Shown: piece by piece, positions 56,730-59,624 of the stretch
Numbering within the stretch: the stretch's first letter is position 1
Layout: the number at the start of each line of letters is the position of its first letter
Assembly: GCF_000737315.1 (NCBI RefSeq)
Contig: NZ_JMCB01000007.1
Coordinates: 321,072-385,071, forward strand
From: Hyalangium minutum
GTDB lineage: Bacteria > Myxococcota > Myxococcia > Myxococcales > Myxococcaceae
Length of the DNA: 64,000 nucleotides
Reading direction: 5' to 3'
Program-made: the position numbers and the translations under genes
Notes under the pieces: generated by a model
The model's input: the letters and a program-made list of their open reading frames with translations, nothing else
Told to the model about the DNA's origin: nothing
The model's database searches: none

Positions 56730-57254
56730 TTACGACTCCAGGCCCACCGCCGCCGCGTGGATGACGGAGGCGATGCGGACCGCGTCATGCACCTGGTCCT
56801 CGGAGAGGCCGCCCTCGAGGACGACCTTCTCGTGGGACTGCACGCACATCTCGCAGCCGTTGATGGCGCTGATGGCCAGGCAGACCAGCTCGAAGTCCAC
56901 CTTGCTCGTCAGCACCTGGGCCAGCCGGTTCATCCGCAGCCCCGGGCGCTTGGTCGAGTAGGACTCCTTCCCGATCATGTGCCGGAACCGGTAGTAGACG
57001 TTGTTCATCCCCATCAGCGAGGCCGCGGCGCGCGCGTCCTCGATGACAGGCTCGGCGTTGGCCAGGGCCTTCTTCGCCTCGTTGATCATGGCCTCCTTCA
57101 GCCGCTCGTTGCGTGCGGCGAAGGCGCTCCCAACGGCCACACCCCAGCGCTGCTCCGGGGTGAGGCTGCCACCCTCCAGCACGGCCTGGAGGTTGAGGCG
57201 GGTGTCCTTGTGGGCGTCCGCCAGCTCACTGCGAACGACTTCGAGCGAGGCCAT
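56730..57254 (-). CDS. ahpD: Alkyl hydroperoxide reductase AhpD
   Basis: MGMNNVYYRF; SAINGCEMCVQSHE CxxC. Confidence 0.93.
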   Translation of the reverse strand: MASLEVVRSELADAHKDTRLNLQAVLEGGSLTPEQRWGVAVGSAFAARNERLKEAMINEAKKALANAEPVIEDARAAASLMGMNNVYYRFRHMIGKESYSTKRPGLRMNRLAQVLTSKVDFELVCLAISAINGCEMCVQSHEKVVLEGGLSEDQVHDAVRIASVIHAAAVGLES

Positions 57255-57260
57255 GGTGGA

Positions 57261-57815
57261 TTACCCCGCCTTCGCCAGCTTCTTGGTGAGCGTCTCCTCA
57301 CCCTTCTGCCAGTTGCACGGGCACAGCTCGTCGGTCTGGAACGCGTCCAGGGTGCGTACCACCTCGGAGACGTTGCGGCCCACGGACAGGTCATTCACCG
57401 ACACGTGCCGGATGACGCCGGTCGGGTCGATGATGAAGGTGGCGCGCAGGGCCACGCCCTCCTCCTTGTGGAGGATGCCCAGGGCGTTGCACAGCTCGTG
57501 CTTCATGTCCGCCAGCATGGGGAAGGGCAGGGCCTTGAGGTCCGGGTGGTGCGTGCGCCACGCGTGGTGCACGAACTCGCTGTCGGTGCTCAGACCCAGG
57601 ACCACGGCGTCGCGGTCACCGAAGTCCTTGTTCTTCTTCCCGAACTCGGCGATCTCCGTCGGGCAGATGAAGGTGAAGTCCTTGGGCCACGCAAACAGGA
57701 TGATCCACTTCCCCTTGTAGCTGTCCTGGGTGATGGTGGTGAACTCCTTGCCCTTCTCCAGGCTCACGGTGGCCTTCACGGAGAAATTGGGAAGCTTGTC
57801 GCCAACGGTCAGCAT
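57261..57815 (-). CDS. ahpC: 2-Cys peroxiredoxin AhpC
   Basis: PKDFTFICPTEI; ELCPCNW; ATG at 57815. Confidence 0.93.
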   Translation of the reverse strand: MLTVGDKLPNFSVKATVSLEKGKEFTTITQDSYKGKWIILFAWPKDFTFICPTEIAEFGKKNKDFGDRDAVVLGLSTDSEFVHHAWRTHHPDLKALPFPMLADMKHELCNALGILHKEEGVALRATFIIDPTGVIRHVSVNDLSVGRNVSEVVRTLDAFQTDELCPCNWQKGEETLTKKLAKAG

Positions 57816-57886
57816 GTGTGACTCCTTGTGGGGTAGGGGACCTGCCTCCACGGCAGGCCCGAAAGGGTTTTGCCAGCTACCACTAG

Positions 57887-57902
57887 AGCAGACGCCGTGC
57901 CA
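57887..57902 (-). promoter_or_regulatory. sigma54 promoter of ahpC-ahpD
   Basis: Minus strand TGGCACGGCGTCTGCT, near-consensus with GG-N10-GC, 71 bp upstream of the ahpC ATG. Confidence 0.8.
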
Positions 57903-57976
57903 GGAAAACGGTCCCAGTCTTTTCAGGAGGTTAGGGATTGAACCCTCCTGAATCGCGCCGCCGGATAGGTGAATAA

Positions 57977-58010
57977 CGAAATGTCGGTGCGCTTCGCCAC
58001 TGCAATTTCG
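57977..58010. promoter_or_regulatory. Candidate enhancer (UAS): imperfect inverted repeat
   Basis: CGAAATGTCGGTG-N8-CACTGCAATTTCG (10/13 arm match), 75-110 bp upstream of the -24 box. Confidence 0.45.
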
Positions 58011-58034
58011 GTGGCCACTGGCTATTCGTGAGGC

Positions 58035-59624
58035 ATGGCACAAGAAACCCTCACGCCCGGCCCCCTGGTGACCCAGGAGGCGAGGGACCTCATGGATCTG
58101 GCCAGTACGGAGGAGTCCGTCTCGGAGCTCCTCCGGCGCGGGTTGGATTGGTTAACGCGCATCACCCGGTTTGACCTGGCCACGCTGTTCCTCCTGAAGG
58201 ACGAGCGGCTGGTGGCGGTGGCGGCGCGCGGGCCGTTGGCCAACGCCAAGGTGCGCGGGCACGTGCTGAAGCTGGCGGAGTTCCCCATGGTGCGCCAGGC
58301 CCTGGAGACGCGCCGGGCGCGTGCCTTCACGGAGGAGGACCACAGTGGCGAGGGCGACCCGTTCGACGGGGTGCTGGACTTGCCTCCGGGGCACTCGTGC
58401 ATGGTGGTGCCGCTGTGCTCCGGCGAGCGCCGCTACGGGGTGCTCACGCTGGACCGCTCCGAGTGCGAGACGTACCCGCAGGCCGTGGTGGACCTGGTGG
58501 AGGTGTACGGGCAGCTGCTGGCCACGGCGCTGCAGAACGCGGAGCAGAAGGCGGCCTTCGAGCGGCTGCACCGGCAGGACCATGAGCACGCCAAGCTGCT
58601 GGAGTCGCAGCTGGGCGGAGACTCGGAGGGCATCCTCGAGACGAGCCTGAGCCCCGTCATGAGGGACCTGGCGCGGCGGGCGAGGCAGGTGGCGGAGACG
58701 GACACGCCGGTGCTGCTGCTGGGCGAGACGGGCACGGGCAAGGAGCGGCTGGCGCGGGCCATCCACCGCTGGAGCCCGCGGGCGGATGAGCCCTTCGTGA
58801 CCATCAACTGCGCGGCCATCCCCGCCGGGCTGTTGGAGAGTGAGCTGTTCGGCCACGTGAAGGGCGCCTTCACGGGGGCCACGCGGGACAGGGCGGGGCG
58901 CTTCCAGATGGCCCACGGCGGCACGCTGCTGCTGGACGAGGTGGGCGAGCTGCCGGTGGAGCTGCAGGCCAAGCTGCTGCGCGCGCTGCAGGAGAAGACG
59001 TTCGAGCCCGTGGGCAGTGACAAGACGGTGCGCGCGGACGTGCGGCTGCTGGCGGCCACGCACGTGGACTTGCAGCAGGCCATCTCCCAGCGGCGCTTCC
59101 GCGAGGACCTCTACTATCGGCTGAGCGTCTTCCCGCTGCGCCTGCCGCCGCTGCGCGAGCGGCTCGAAGACTTGCCGCAGCTGTGCGCGTTCCTCCTGGA
59201 CGAGCAGTCTCGCCGCACGGGGCGGCGCGGCATGCGCGTGACGTCCGAGGGGCTGGAGCGCCTGGCCGCGTACGGATGGCCGGGCAACCTGCGCGAGCTG
59301 GCCAACGTGCTCGAGCGCGCCACCATCCTCTCGCGTGTGCCGGAGCTGGGGCCGGACGCGTTCGATCTGCCCGTGCGCGAGAAGGCCCTGACGGCGGCCC
59401 CCACCGTCTCCGCCGCGAGGGCAGAGAAGAGTGAGAAGGTGGCCACGCTCGCGGCGGTGCAGCGCGAGCACATCCTCCGGGTGCTCTCGCTGACGAAGGG
59501 CCGCATCTACGGGCCCGGGGGTGCGGCGCAGTTGTTGGGTCTCAAGCCCTCCACGCTGCAGAGCCGCATGAAGAAGCTCGGCATCGCGCGCCAGGACCAG
59601 TTCATCGTCGAAAGTCCAAGTTGA
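58035..59624 (+). CDS. NorR-like GAF-AAA+-HTH sigma54 enhancer-binding protein
   Basis: GAF with DPFDG, HSC and LTLD; GETGTGKE; [15 protein letters not shown]; C-terminal Fis-type HTH. Confidence 0.85.

Follow-up and report, generated by a model that had tools for sequence, protein, structure and literature searches.

Identity of the locus

The window, the whole 64 kb stretch of DNA that was analyzed, very probably carries a peroxide-stress module, pexR-ahpCD, from a Hyalangium-like myxobacterium, and the orthologous genes in M. xanthus are MXAN_1565-1564-1563 (probability about 0.9). The module is already known and is not new. Its design was published for M. xanthus PexR in late 2025 (Bastida-Martinez et al., NAR 2025, PMC12754779). 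The activator is 82% identical to that of M. xanthus over residues 14 to 526 (513 residues) and the gene order is the same. It was assigned unambiguously as an orthologue of PexR because of this identity and the identical synteny. Identity to the activators of Hyalangium and related genomes was 88 to 90%. Gene content, domain architecture, orthology and the conservation of ligands, promoter and repeats were computed here. DNA binding, sigma-54 dependence, dual repression and activation, metal binding and H2O2-triggered metal release have been established by others in the M. xanthus orthologue (PMC12754779). An earlier note on this DNA had described a sigma-54-driven ahpC-ahpD under a NorR-related metal-GAF enhancer-binding protein in place of OxyR or PerR control, and the same design has been demonstrated by experiment for M. 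xanthus PexR (PMC12754779). All elements named in that note were confirmed at the coordinates it gave. Reading the sequence by itself was enough to recover a real regulatory design that had been discovered only recently. The Hyalangium window adds just one orthologue, inside a clade which the PexR authors had surveyed. The features of the locus are listed in Table 1.

Table 1. Positions of genes, protein domains and regulatory elements at the pexR-ahpCD locus, numbered within the window.
Feature	Position	Strand	Description
ahpD	56730..57254	-	Alkylhydroperoxidase, CxxC, reductase partner of AhpC, 174 aa; TIGR00777 1e-47, Pfam CMD, synteny
ahpC	57261..57815	-	Typical 2-Cys peroxiredoxin, 184 aa; Pfam AhpC-TSA 3e-38, TIGR03137 1e-45
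ahpC Shine-Dalgarno	57822-57827	-	AAGGAG, upstream of ahpC
GC-rich stem-loop	57838..57860	-	GGGCCUGCC-GUGGA-GGCAGGUCC; predicted in ahpC 5' UTR by MFE fold
ahpC sigma-54 promoter	57902..57887	-	TGGCAC-GGCGT-CTGCT, TGGCACGGCGTCTGCT; consensus match and conservation; 87 nt upstream of ahpC ATG
IHF-like element	57921..57933	+	TTTCAGGAGGTTA; 2 mismatches to WATCAANNNNTTR; between repeats and -24 box; conserved block
PexR repeat C	57956..57971	-	CACCTATCCGGCGGCG; degenerate, 2 mismatches; 2 bp past B, as in M. xanthus
PexR repeat B	57974..57989	-	CACCGACATTTCGTTA; 5' half perfect, 3' half 2 mismatches; 8 bp past A, as in M. xanthus
PexR repeat A	57998..58013	-	CACCGAAATTGCAGTG; 1 mismatch to CACCG-N6-CGGTG
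-10-like hexamer	58023..58028	+	TATTCG; 6 nt before pexR ATG; read from sequence
pexR	58035..59624	+	Group III bacterial enhancer-binding protein, 529 aa; Pfam domains and orthology
PexR GAF	~residues 27-168 (58113-58538)	+	Pfam GAF_3/GAF_2
PexR AAA+ with GAFTGA	residues 206-368 (58650-59138)	+	Pfam Sigma54_activat 2e-70
PexR lid	residues 374-454	+	Pfam AAA_lid_14
PexR Fis-type HTH	residues 472-515 (59448-59579)	+	Pfam HTH_8

Target genes and orthologous loci

AhpC has its cysteines in the motifs FTFICPTE and LCPCNW and is 80 to 97% identical across orthologous loci. AhpD has a CEMC..H motif, and ahpD starts 6 nt past the ahpC stop. The mycobacterial type of AhpC/AhpD likewise has ahpC followed by ahpD (CxxC, CMD fold) and not by ahpF, but its regulation is entirely different. 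In addition to ahpCD the neighbors are genes for a lipoprotein, a DUF308 protein, an aminotransferase and a large Ig-repeat protein. As the earlier note had stated, no NO reductase gene is nearby, and no NO-detoxifying gene (norVW, norB, hmp or hcp) adjoins the activator. The M. xanthus regulon includes katB-ankB, whereas no katB-ankB target was found inside the Hyalangium window; a search of the 64 kb for a second PexR target gave no katB-type target and no second sigma-54 box.

A survey of synteny, suggested earlier as a check, placed ahpD-ahpC divergent to the activator in approximately 46 of approximately 50 myxobacterial loci. The two genes also lie upstream on the opposite strand in one Planctomycetota MAG. 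The gene dps, present downstream of ahpD in most orthologous loci, is missing from this one and from its four nearest relatives, a slight difference in operon content. The homologue from Geothrix rubra, in the sister clade, lies opposite a rubrerythrin gene with this sigma-54 box and with CACCG half-sites. Homologues at greater distance are found facing genes for rubrerythrin or cytochrome c peroxidase, not NO reductases. The family therefore tracks genes of peroxide detoxification.

The activator and its predicted metal site

The divergent GAF-AAA+ activator of the earlier note is present on the plus strand. Its domain order of GAF, sigma-54 AAA+ and HTH is that of PexR, and GAFTGA and Walker A/B motifs were seen in the alignment. 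Residues H103, H120, C122 and D140 align with the mutationally defined PexR ligands H102, H120, C122 and D140 (M. xanthus numbering), through which M. xanthus PexR binds Zn2+/Fe2+ (PMC12754779). The sensing histidine is residue 103 here and 102 in M. xanthus owing to a 1-residue indel. None of the four varies among 54 homologues, the lowest GAF identity being 48%. The same holds for D108, D111 and C144 across these homologues from three phyla. The ligand set first proposed from NorR was right in part. C122 and D140 are PexR ligands. The histidine upstream of DPFDG (H103) had been missed, and the DPFDG aspartates D108 and D111 are dispensable for the H2O2 response in M. xanthus, where D108A and D111A had a negligible effect (PMC12754779).

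Sigma-54 promoter, enhancer repeats and spacer

The near-consensus sigma-54 box reported earlier upstream of ahpC has its GG at 57901/57900 and its GC at 57889/57888, with a predicted transcription start at about 57876. A search of the window for TGGCAC-N5-TTGCW (≤1 mismatch) gave this single box, compared to 2.2 hits expected by chance, a count which taken alone is not significant. In approximately 45 orthologous loci both hexamers keep their position, and the 5 nt between them are free to change. 5'-RACE and mutation of the -24/-12 elements have validated the corresponding promoter in M. xanthus (PMC12754779). The position of the box, 83 to 90 nt before the ATG, is shared with M. xanthus.

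The inverted repeat noticed earlier at enhancer distance belongs to a set of three 16-bp dyads that resemble CACCG-N6-CGGTG and lie at 57956-58013, approximately 87 to 129 nt upstream of the predicted ahpC transcription start. Repeats A to C match R1 to R3 of M. xanthus PahpC in sequence, layout and their 8-bp and 2-bp gaps. Repeat A is near-invariant in the orthologue alignment and identical to the corresponding M. xanthus repeat, which was bound by PexR in EMSA and ChIP (PMC12754779). In repeats B and C the 3' half is degenerate, and 3'-half mismatches were also reported for the M. xanthus PahpC repeats (PMC12754779). The 5' half of repeat C is CACCG in most orthologues. The spacer is 219 bp with one three-repeat set for both genes, compared to 484 bp and a second set near pexR in M. 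xanthus. A short spacer is noted to be the usual form (PMC12754779). Across the window 22 matches to CACCG-N6-CGGTG (≤1 mismatch) were scattered without a cluster, with 7.5 expected.

Of 46 distinct orthologous spacers, 41 have the IHF-like element in this position with ≤2 mismatches, compared to approximately 15% of shuffles, which is only suggestive of a real element as these spacers are related to one another. The main text on PexR makes no mention of IHF (PMC12754779). The comparative data form a clean phylogenetic footprint of enhancer, IHF-like site and -24/-12 box.

Consensus scans of 56500-58200 gave no match for a sigma-70 promoter or an intrinsic terminator. Boxes of the TATTCG, TATTAT or GTTATC type lie just before pexR in the same place across orthologues. 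The position of TATTCG in the Hyalangium sequence suggests that the pexR mRNA is probably leaderless, a type of start shared with M. xanthus, with a -35 region that would overlap repeat A. Leaderless pexR transcripts were inferred in species with short spacers (PMC12754779).

Comparison with M. xanthus PexR and other sensors

M. xanthus PexR (MXAN_1565, UniProt Q1DC06) shares the GAF-AAA+-HTH architecture, the four ligand residues and the divergent ahpC-ahpD (MXAN_1564/1563). Acting from three CACCG-N6-CGGTG-type repeats, it switches on ahpC and katB at their sigma-54 promoters, and in the resting state it is a repressor of a sigma-A promoter of ahpC that the repeats overlap (PMC12754779). H2O2 releases its metal and relieves the autoinhibition by the GAF domain (PMC12754779). 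The evidence included ChIP-qPCR, EMSA, 5'-RACE, mutations of the -24/-12 elements and repeats, and a constitutively active delta-GAF variant (PMC12754779). Metal content was measured by ICP-MS and the H2O2-induced release of Zn/Fe was followed (PMC12754779).

E. coli NorR (b2709) aligned with the activator at 39% identity over residues 108 to 517 by BLASTP. The motifs DPFDG, HSC and LTLD had been aligned with NorR D96/D99, C113 and D131. BLASTP and MAFFT confirmed this, with D108/D111 at D96/D99, H120/C122 at H111/C113 and D140 at D131. NorR R75 was correctly read as replaced, by methionine (M85), and R81 by glutamate (E91), in an N-terminal part of the GAF where the alignment is weak and which BLASTP enters only at residue 108. 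NCBIfam NF003451 (NorR equivalog) was the best-scoring family with an end-to-end alignment, scoring 405.4 bits compared to a curated cut-off of 476. No GT-N7-AC NorR box was found in the intergenic region 57816-58034, in line with the first reading, compared to three between norR and norV in E. coli.

The activator was rejected as a member of NorR based on the score below the NF003451 cut-off, the replaced R75, the missing GT-N7-AC boxes and the lack of an NO-detoxifying neighbor.

Both proteins are group III enhancer-binding proteins with an autoinhibitory GAF domain binding a non-heme metal, and both have three enhancer dyads and a divergent sigma-54 promoter. PexR differs in the extra sensing histidine (H103), in boxes of CACCG-N6-CGGTG rather than GTCA-N3-TGAC, in its peroxide-scavenger targets, in H2O2 as signal, in metal loss rather than nitrosylation as output, and in also repressing a sigma-A promoter.

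OxyR and PerR are functional analogues with H2O2-responsive control of ahpC and catalase, and PerR also has a His/Asp Fe2+/Zn2+ site. Unlike PexR they have unrelated folds (LysR and Fur families), depend on sigma-70 and have no ATPase. M. xanthus lacks bona fide OxyR and PerR (PMC12754779). PexR represents a third, mechanistically distinct bacterial route of peroxide sensing, combining a metal-GAF with a sigma-54 ATPase. It is a possible scaffold for H2O2 biosensors.

Signal and proposed mechanism

The demonstrated inducers of PexR are H2O2 and tert-butyl hydroperoxide, and the regulon is ahpCD and the catalase operon katB-ankB (PMC12754779). Of the two signals named in the earlier note, peroxide, given as the fallback, is the one shown for the orthologue. 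The headline of a candidate NO/peroxynitrite response was not supported, given these inducers, this regulon and the rubrerythrin and ccp genes faced by distant homologues.

PexR might be a dual sensor. H2O2 would act through metal loss, NO would bind to the Fe(II) form as in NorR, via D108/D111 and possibly C144, and AhpC/AhpD would also serve in NO/peroxynitrite defense. This is unlikely.

NO or peroxynitrite as the physiological signal is a very improbable reading. Here a NorR-type Fe(II)-GAF would be relieved of inhibition by a mononitrosyl-iron complex and AhpC/AhpD would be a peroxynitrite reductase, an activity which mycobacterial AhpC has. Of the five iron ligands of NorR, D96, D99, C113 and D131 are aligned, as is H111, and D108 and D111 are invariant although dispensable for the M. 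xanthus H2O2 response. Reconstitution of the PexR GAF with Fe2+ is possible, and PexR "might also sense NO" according to its authors, but its GAF identity to NorR is just 19% or so and the orthologue regulon is induced by peroxides (PMC12754779). The family score and the replaced R75 and R81 also argue against it, and no homologue examined has an NO-detoxifying gene beside it, the targets being ahpCD, katB, rbr and ccp.

It is hardly credible that the GAF is primarily a sensor of Fe/Zn availability, triggered by metal loss on starvation rather than by oxidation with peroxide acting indirectly: activation is metal loss, apo-mimicking ligand mutants are constitutively active and iron-uptake genes are up in a delta-ahpC strain (PMC12754779), and the dps behind ahpD in most loci is iron-sequestering, but a 10-min H2O2 pulse induces katB, H2O2 directly frees Zn/Fe from the purified GAF, the sub-nanomolar Zn affinity (0.27 nM) makes passive loss unlikely (PMC12754779), and the regulon consists of peroxide scavengers.

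For the peroxide-responsive PexR module in Hyalangium every biochemical step is inferred, as are the involvement of IHF and of a sigma-A promoter. PexR dimers would occupy the three dyads. At rest the GAF would hold one Zn2+/Fe2+ via the four ligands and keep the AAA+ domain inhibited. Bound PexR would then dampen a housekeeping sigma-A ahpC promoter overlapping the dyads, and the leaderless pexR promoter would probably be dampened as well. Once H2O2 or an organic hydroperoxide has reacted at the metal/Cys center, the metal would leave and the GAF inhibition would be lifted. PexR would oligomerize and drive ATP-dependent opening of the sigma-54 holoenzyme complex at TGGCAC-N5-CTGCT, probably aided by a DNA bend at the IHF-like site. 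The outcome would be induction of ahpC-ahpD.

Predicted hairpin in the ahpC 5' UTR

The fold of the predicted 5' UTR hairpin had a z of -1.17 compared to shuffles, which is not significant by itself. RNAalifold gave no consensus structure for 14 5' UTRs aligned with MAFFT because this alignment sets the hairpin arms out of register. When sequences were folded one by one a hairpin of 7 to 11 bp was predicted at the same spot in nearly all orthologues, with differing sequences.

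The ahpCD operon and its divergent activator

The activator encoded divergently from ahpC-ahpD corresponds to PexR (MXAN_1565), the metal-binding GAF/AAA+/HTH sigma-54 activator of Myxococcus xanthus (Bastida-Martinez et al., PMC12754779). The divergent GAF-AAA+ protein described in the earlier note was present and its domains were matched. It was 82% identical to the protein of the M. xanthus locus. Its closest match was in a soil MAG (90%), followed by Hyalangium versicolor (88%) and then by other Myxococcaceae/Archangiaceae (77-87%); the source is a Hyalangium-like myxobacterium. 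The pexR start lies 219 bp from ahpC on the opposite strand. Features of the locus are listed in the table.

In M. xanthus PexR is likewise divergent from ahpC (MXAN_1564) and ahpD (MXAN_1563) (PMC12754779). Of the myxobacterial loci retrieved, nearly all shared this layout, as did one Planctomycetota MAG. Across Myxococcota, conservation extends to PexR and its ligands, to both the sigma-54 and the sigma-A promoter and to three UAS, with pexR-ahpC spacers mostly <300 bp (PMC12754779). In Acidobacteriota, Planctomycetota and other phyla, homologues have ahpC, rbr or ccp as a neighbor (PMC12754779).

Features of the ahpCD-pexR locus, with positions in the window
Feature	Position	Strand	Remarks
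Lipoprotein gene	55698-56693	-	lipobox LATACGG; no Pfam family
ahpD	56730-57254	-	TIGR00777 1e-47; CxxC..H motif; start six bases past ahpC stop
ahpC	57261-57815	-	typical 2-Cys peroxiredoxin; AhpC-TSA 3e-38
GC-rich hairpin, ahpC 5' UTR	57838-57860	-	predicted stem-loop
Sigma-54 box TGGCACGGCGTCTGCT	57902..57887	- (ahpC strand)	87 nt upstream of ahpC ATG
IHF-like conserved block TTTCAGGAGGTTA	57921-57933	+	between repeat C and -24 box
Repeat C CACCTATCCGGCGGCG	57971..57956	- (ahpC strand)	2 mismatches to palindrome
Repeat B CACCGACATTTCGTTA	57989..57974	- (ahpC strand)	2 mismatches to palindrome
Repeat A CACCGAAATTGCAGTG	58013..57998	- (ahpC strand)	1 mismatch to palindrome
-10-like TATTCG	58023-58028	+	6 nt 5' of pexR ATG
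pexR	58035-59624	+	529 aa; N-terminal GAF, sigma-54 interaction AAA+ (2e-70) with GAFTGA, lid, Fis-type HTH
Codon D108	58356-58358		
Codon D111	58365-58367		
Codon C144	58464-58466		
Secreted protein gene	59870-63823	+	1317 aa; NHL/SGL beta-propeller-like N-terminal part, then HYR and five bacterial surface Ig-like domains

Promoter and enhancer elements

The near-consensus sigma-54 box reported upstream of ahpC was present. With up to one mismatch allowed, TGGCAC-N5-TTGCW matched nowhere else in the 64-kb window; a single match is not unusual, as 2.2 are expected by chance. The weight of the evidence for this putative promoter lies in the comparison across loci and not in the match count. Across about 45 orthologous loci TGGCAC and CTGCT were kept 82-91 nt 5' of the ahpC ATG, and the five bases between them varied freely. 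The Nannocystis version was TGGTAT-N5-CTGCT.

The enhancer comprises three 16-bp units of the CACCG-N6-CGGTG type, repeats A, B and C, with gaps of 8 bp (A-B) and 2 bp (B-C). These gaps are exactly those of the M. xanthus ahpC-proximal set, CACCGAAATTGCAGTG-8-CACCGAGATTTCGTTA-2-CACCGGCCCAGCGGCG. In M. xanthus and species close to it, the spacer is longer and includes another set of repeats beside pexR. The window has the short spacer that is common, with a single set acting for both genes. In M. xanthus the tandem dyads upstream of ahpC and katB are bound by PexR, as determined by ChIP-qPCR in vivo and EMSA in vitro (PMC12754779). Across the whole window 22 sites matched CACCG-N6-CGGTG (<=1 mismatch) compared to 7.5 expected from shuffles. 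They were scattered with no cluster, and codon or GC composition, not PexR binding, probably accounts for the excess. The only perfect copy in the window was at 13885-13900.

The -10-like TATTCG, replaced at the same position by TATTAT or GTTATC in orthologues, agrees with the proposal in PMC12754779 that the pexR transcript is leaderless. No consensus match to a sigma-A ahpC promoter was found in a sigma-70 scan of 56500-58200.

The IHF consensus WATCAANNNNTTR was matched with <=2 mismatches at the position of the IHF-like block in 41/46 distinct spacers, compared to ~15% of shuffles. The Archangium counterpart was AGTCAACCCTTTG. The main text of PMC12754779 makes no mention of IHF. Per-sequence folds predicted a 7-11 bp stem-loop at the place matching the window hairpin in nearly all orthologous ahpC UTRs. 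The arm sequences vary between genera and the differences look compensatory. RNAalifold on the MAFFT alignment of ahpC UTRs returned no consensus structure, and the window hairpin had a single-sequence z-score of only -1.17, without statistical support from the tests run.

Metal ligands and comparison to NorR

The GAF domain of M. xanthus PexR holds Zn2+ or Fe2+ via H102, H120, C122 and D140, and alanine at these positions gives less metal and a constitutively active protein (PMC12754779). By MAFFT these correspond to H103, H120, C122 and D140 of the window protein, the one-residue shift of H103 being due to an indel. All four were invariant in 54/54 homologues, down to 48% GAF identity.

D108, D111 and C144 were invariant to the same extent, although D108A, D111A and C144A had negligible effect on H2O2 signalling by M. 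xanthus PexR (PMC12754779). This conservation suggests a role other than the H2O2 response, which might involve Fe coordination, NO or a redox partner. It also favors the proposal of the earlier note that the window protein senses NO or peroxynitrite, as does the authors' remark that PexR 'might also sense NO' (PMC12754779). Sensing of NO or peroxynitrite would be a side possibility only.

BLASTP and MAFFT against E. coli NorR aligned DPFDG with DPYDG (D96/D99), HSC with HAC (H111/C113) and LTLD with LTLD (D131), as the earlier note had it. The NorR R75 position was replaced by Met, and R81 was also changed, to Glu. NorR was the best-scoring NCBIfam model, aligned end to end, at 405 bits compared to the curated cut-off of 476. 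No canonical GT-N7-AC box was found in the window spacer; three GTCA-N3-TGAC boxes are present between E. coli norR and norV, in contrast to the CACCG-N6-CGGTG-type dyads of the window. Identity as NorR was rejected on the sub-cut-off score, the unconserved R75, the different enhancer boxes and the lack of a nearby NO-detoxifying gene. The authors regard PexR and NorR as related but repurposed (33% overall, ~19% GAF identity) (PMC12754779).

In Geothrix rubra (L051, 3208-3922) a 54% homologue and a rubrerythrin gene are transcribed divergently, with CCG/4Fe-4S and DUF3501 genes after the latter. The spacer between them contained TGGCAC-N5-CTGCT, CACCG half-sites and a stretch very rich in AT. 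This homologue faces rubrerythrin and no NO-detoxifying gene was found among the window neighbors of pexR; peroxide scavengers are therefore the consistent partners of the family.

Since the box, the motif alignment, the replaced R75 and the missing GT-N7-AC box all checked out, the observation was confirmed in every particular. The module, in which a sigma-54 activator with a metal-binding GAF domain, related to NorR, has been rewired to a peroxiredoxin operon, is real and was correctly described. This design was published in December 2025 (PMC12754779).

Proposed mechanism

In M. xanthus PexR represses at rest a sigma-A ahpC promoter overlapping the dyads (PMC12754779). Under peroxide stress it turns on sigma-54 promoters that were confirmed by 5'-RACE and -24/-12 mutations, and deletion of the GAF domain renders it constitutively active (PMC12754779). 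Bound Zn2+/Fe2+ is released from the purified GAF domain by H2O2 (PMC12754779). The domains, residues, sigma-54 box and repeats of this module are all present in the window.

It is very likely (probability about 0.9) that the published mechanism applies in the window organism. Resting, metal-loaded PexR on repeats A-C would have its AAA+ domain kept off and would dampen sigma-A transcription. Peroxide would remove the metal and lift the GAF inhibition, and the freed ATPase would open the sigma-54 promoter of ahpCD. We infer these biochemical steps from the M. xanthus orthologue, in which they were shown. A pure metal-starvation sensor is unlikely because metal release is directly induced by H2O2 and Zn affinity is sub-nanomolar (PMC12754779).

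Flanking genes and separated loci

In most orthologous loci the gene after ahpD is dps (miniferritin), including Myxococcus, Corallococcus, Archangium, Cystobacter and a Planctomycetota MAG (L004-L055, ~2050-2580). No dps was found 3' of ahpD in the window (56510-56730) or in its four closest relatives (L001, L002, L003 and L031). In the window the gene directly 3' of ahpD encodes a lipoprotein. Counterparts of this lipoprotein with 53-70% identity occur in Myxococcus, Pyxidicoccus and Hyalangium loci, on the downstream side of ahpCD or ahpCD-dps. The secreted protein gene adjoins pexR on its downstream side.

Corallococcus coralloides KYC2213 (L014) and Myxococcus dinghuensis (L007) kept the pexR-proximal CACCG repeats with ahpCD not within 4 kb. 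Their ahpCD was presumably relocated or separated by insertion. The place of ahpCD upstream of pexR is taken in L014 by a PLP-dependent decarboxylase gene.
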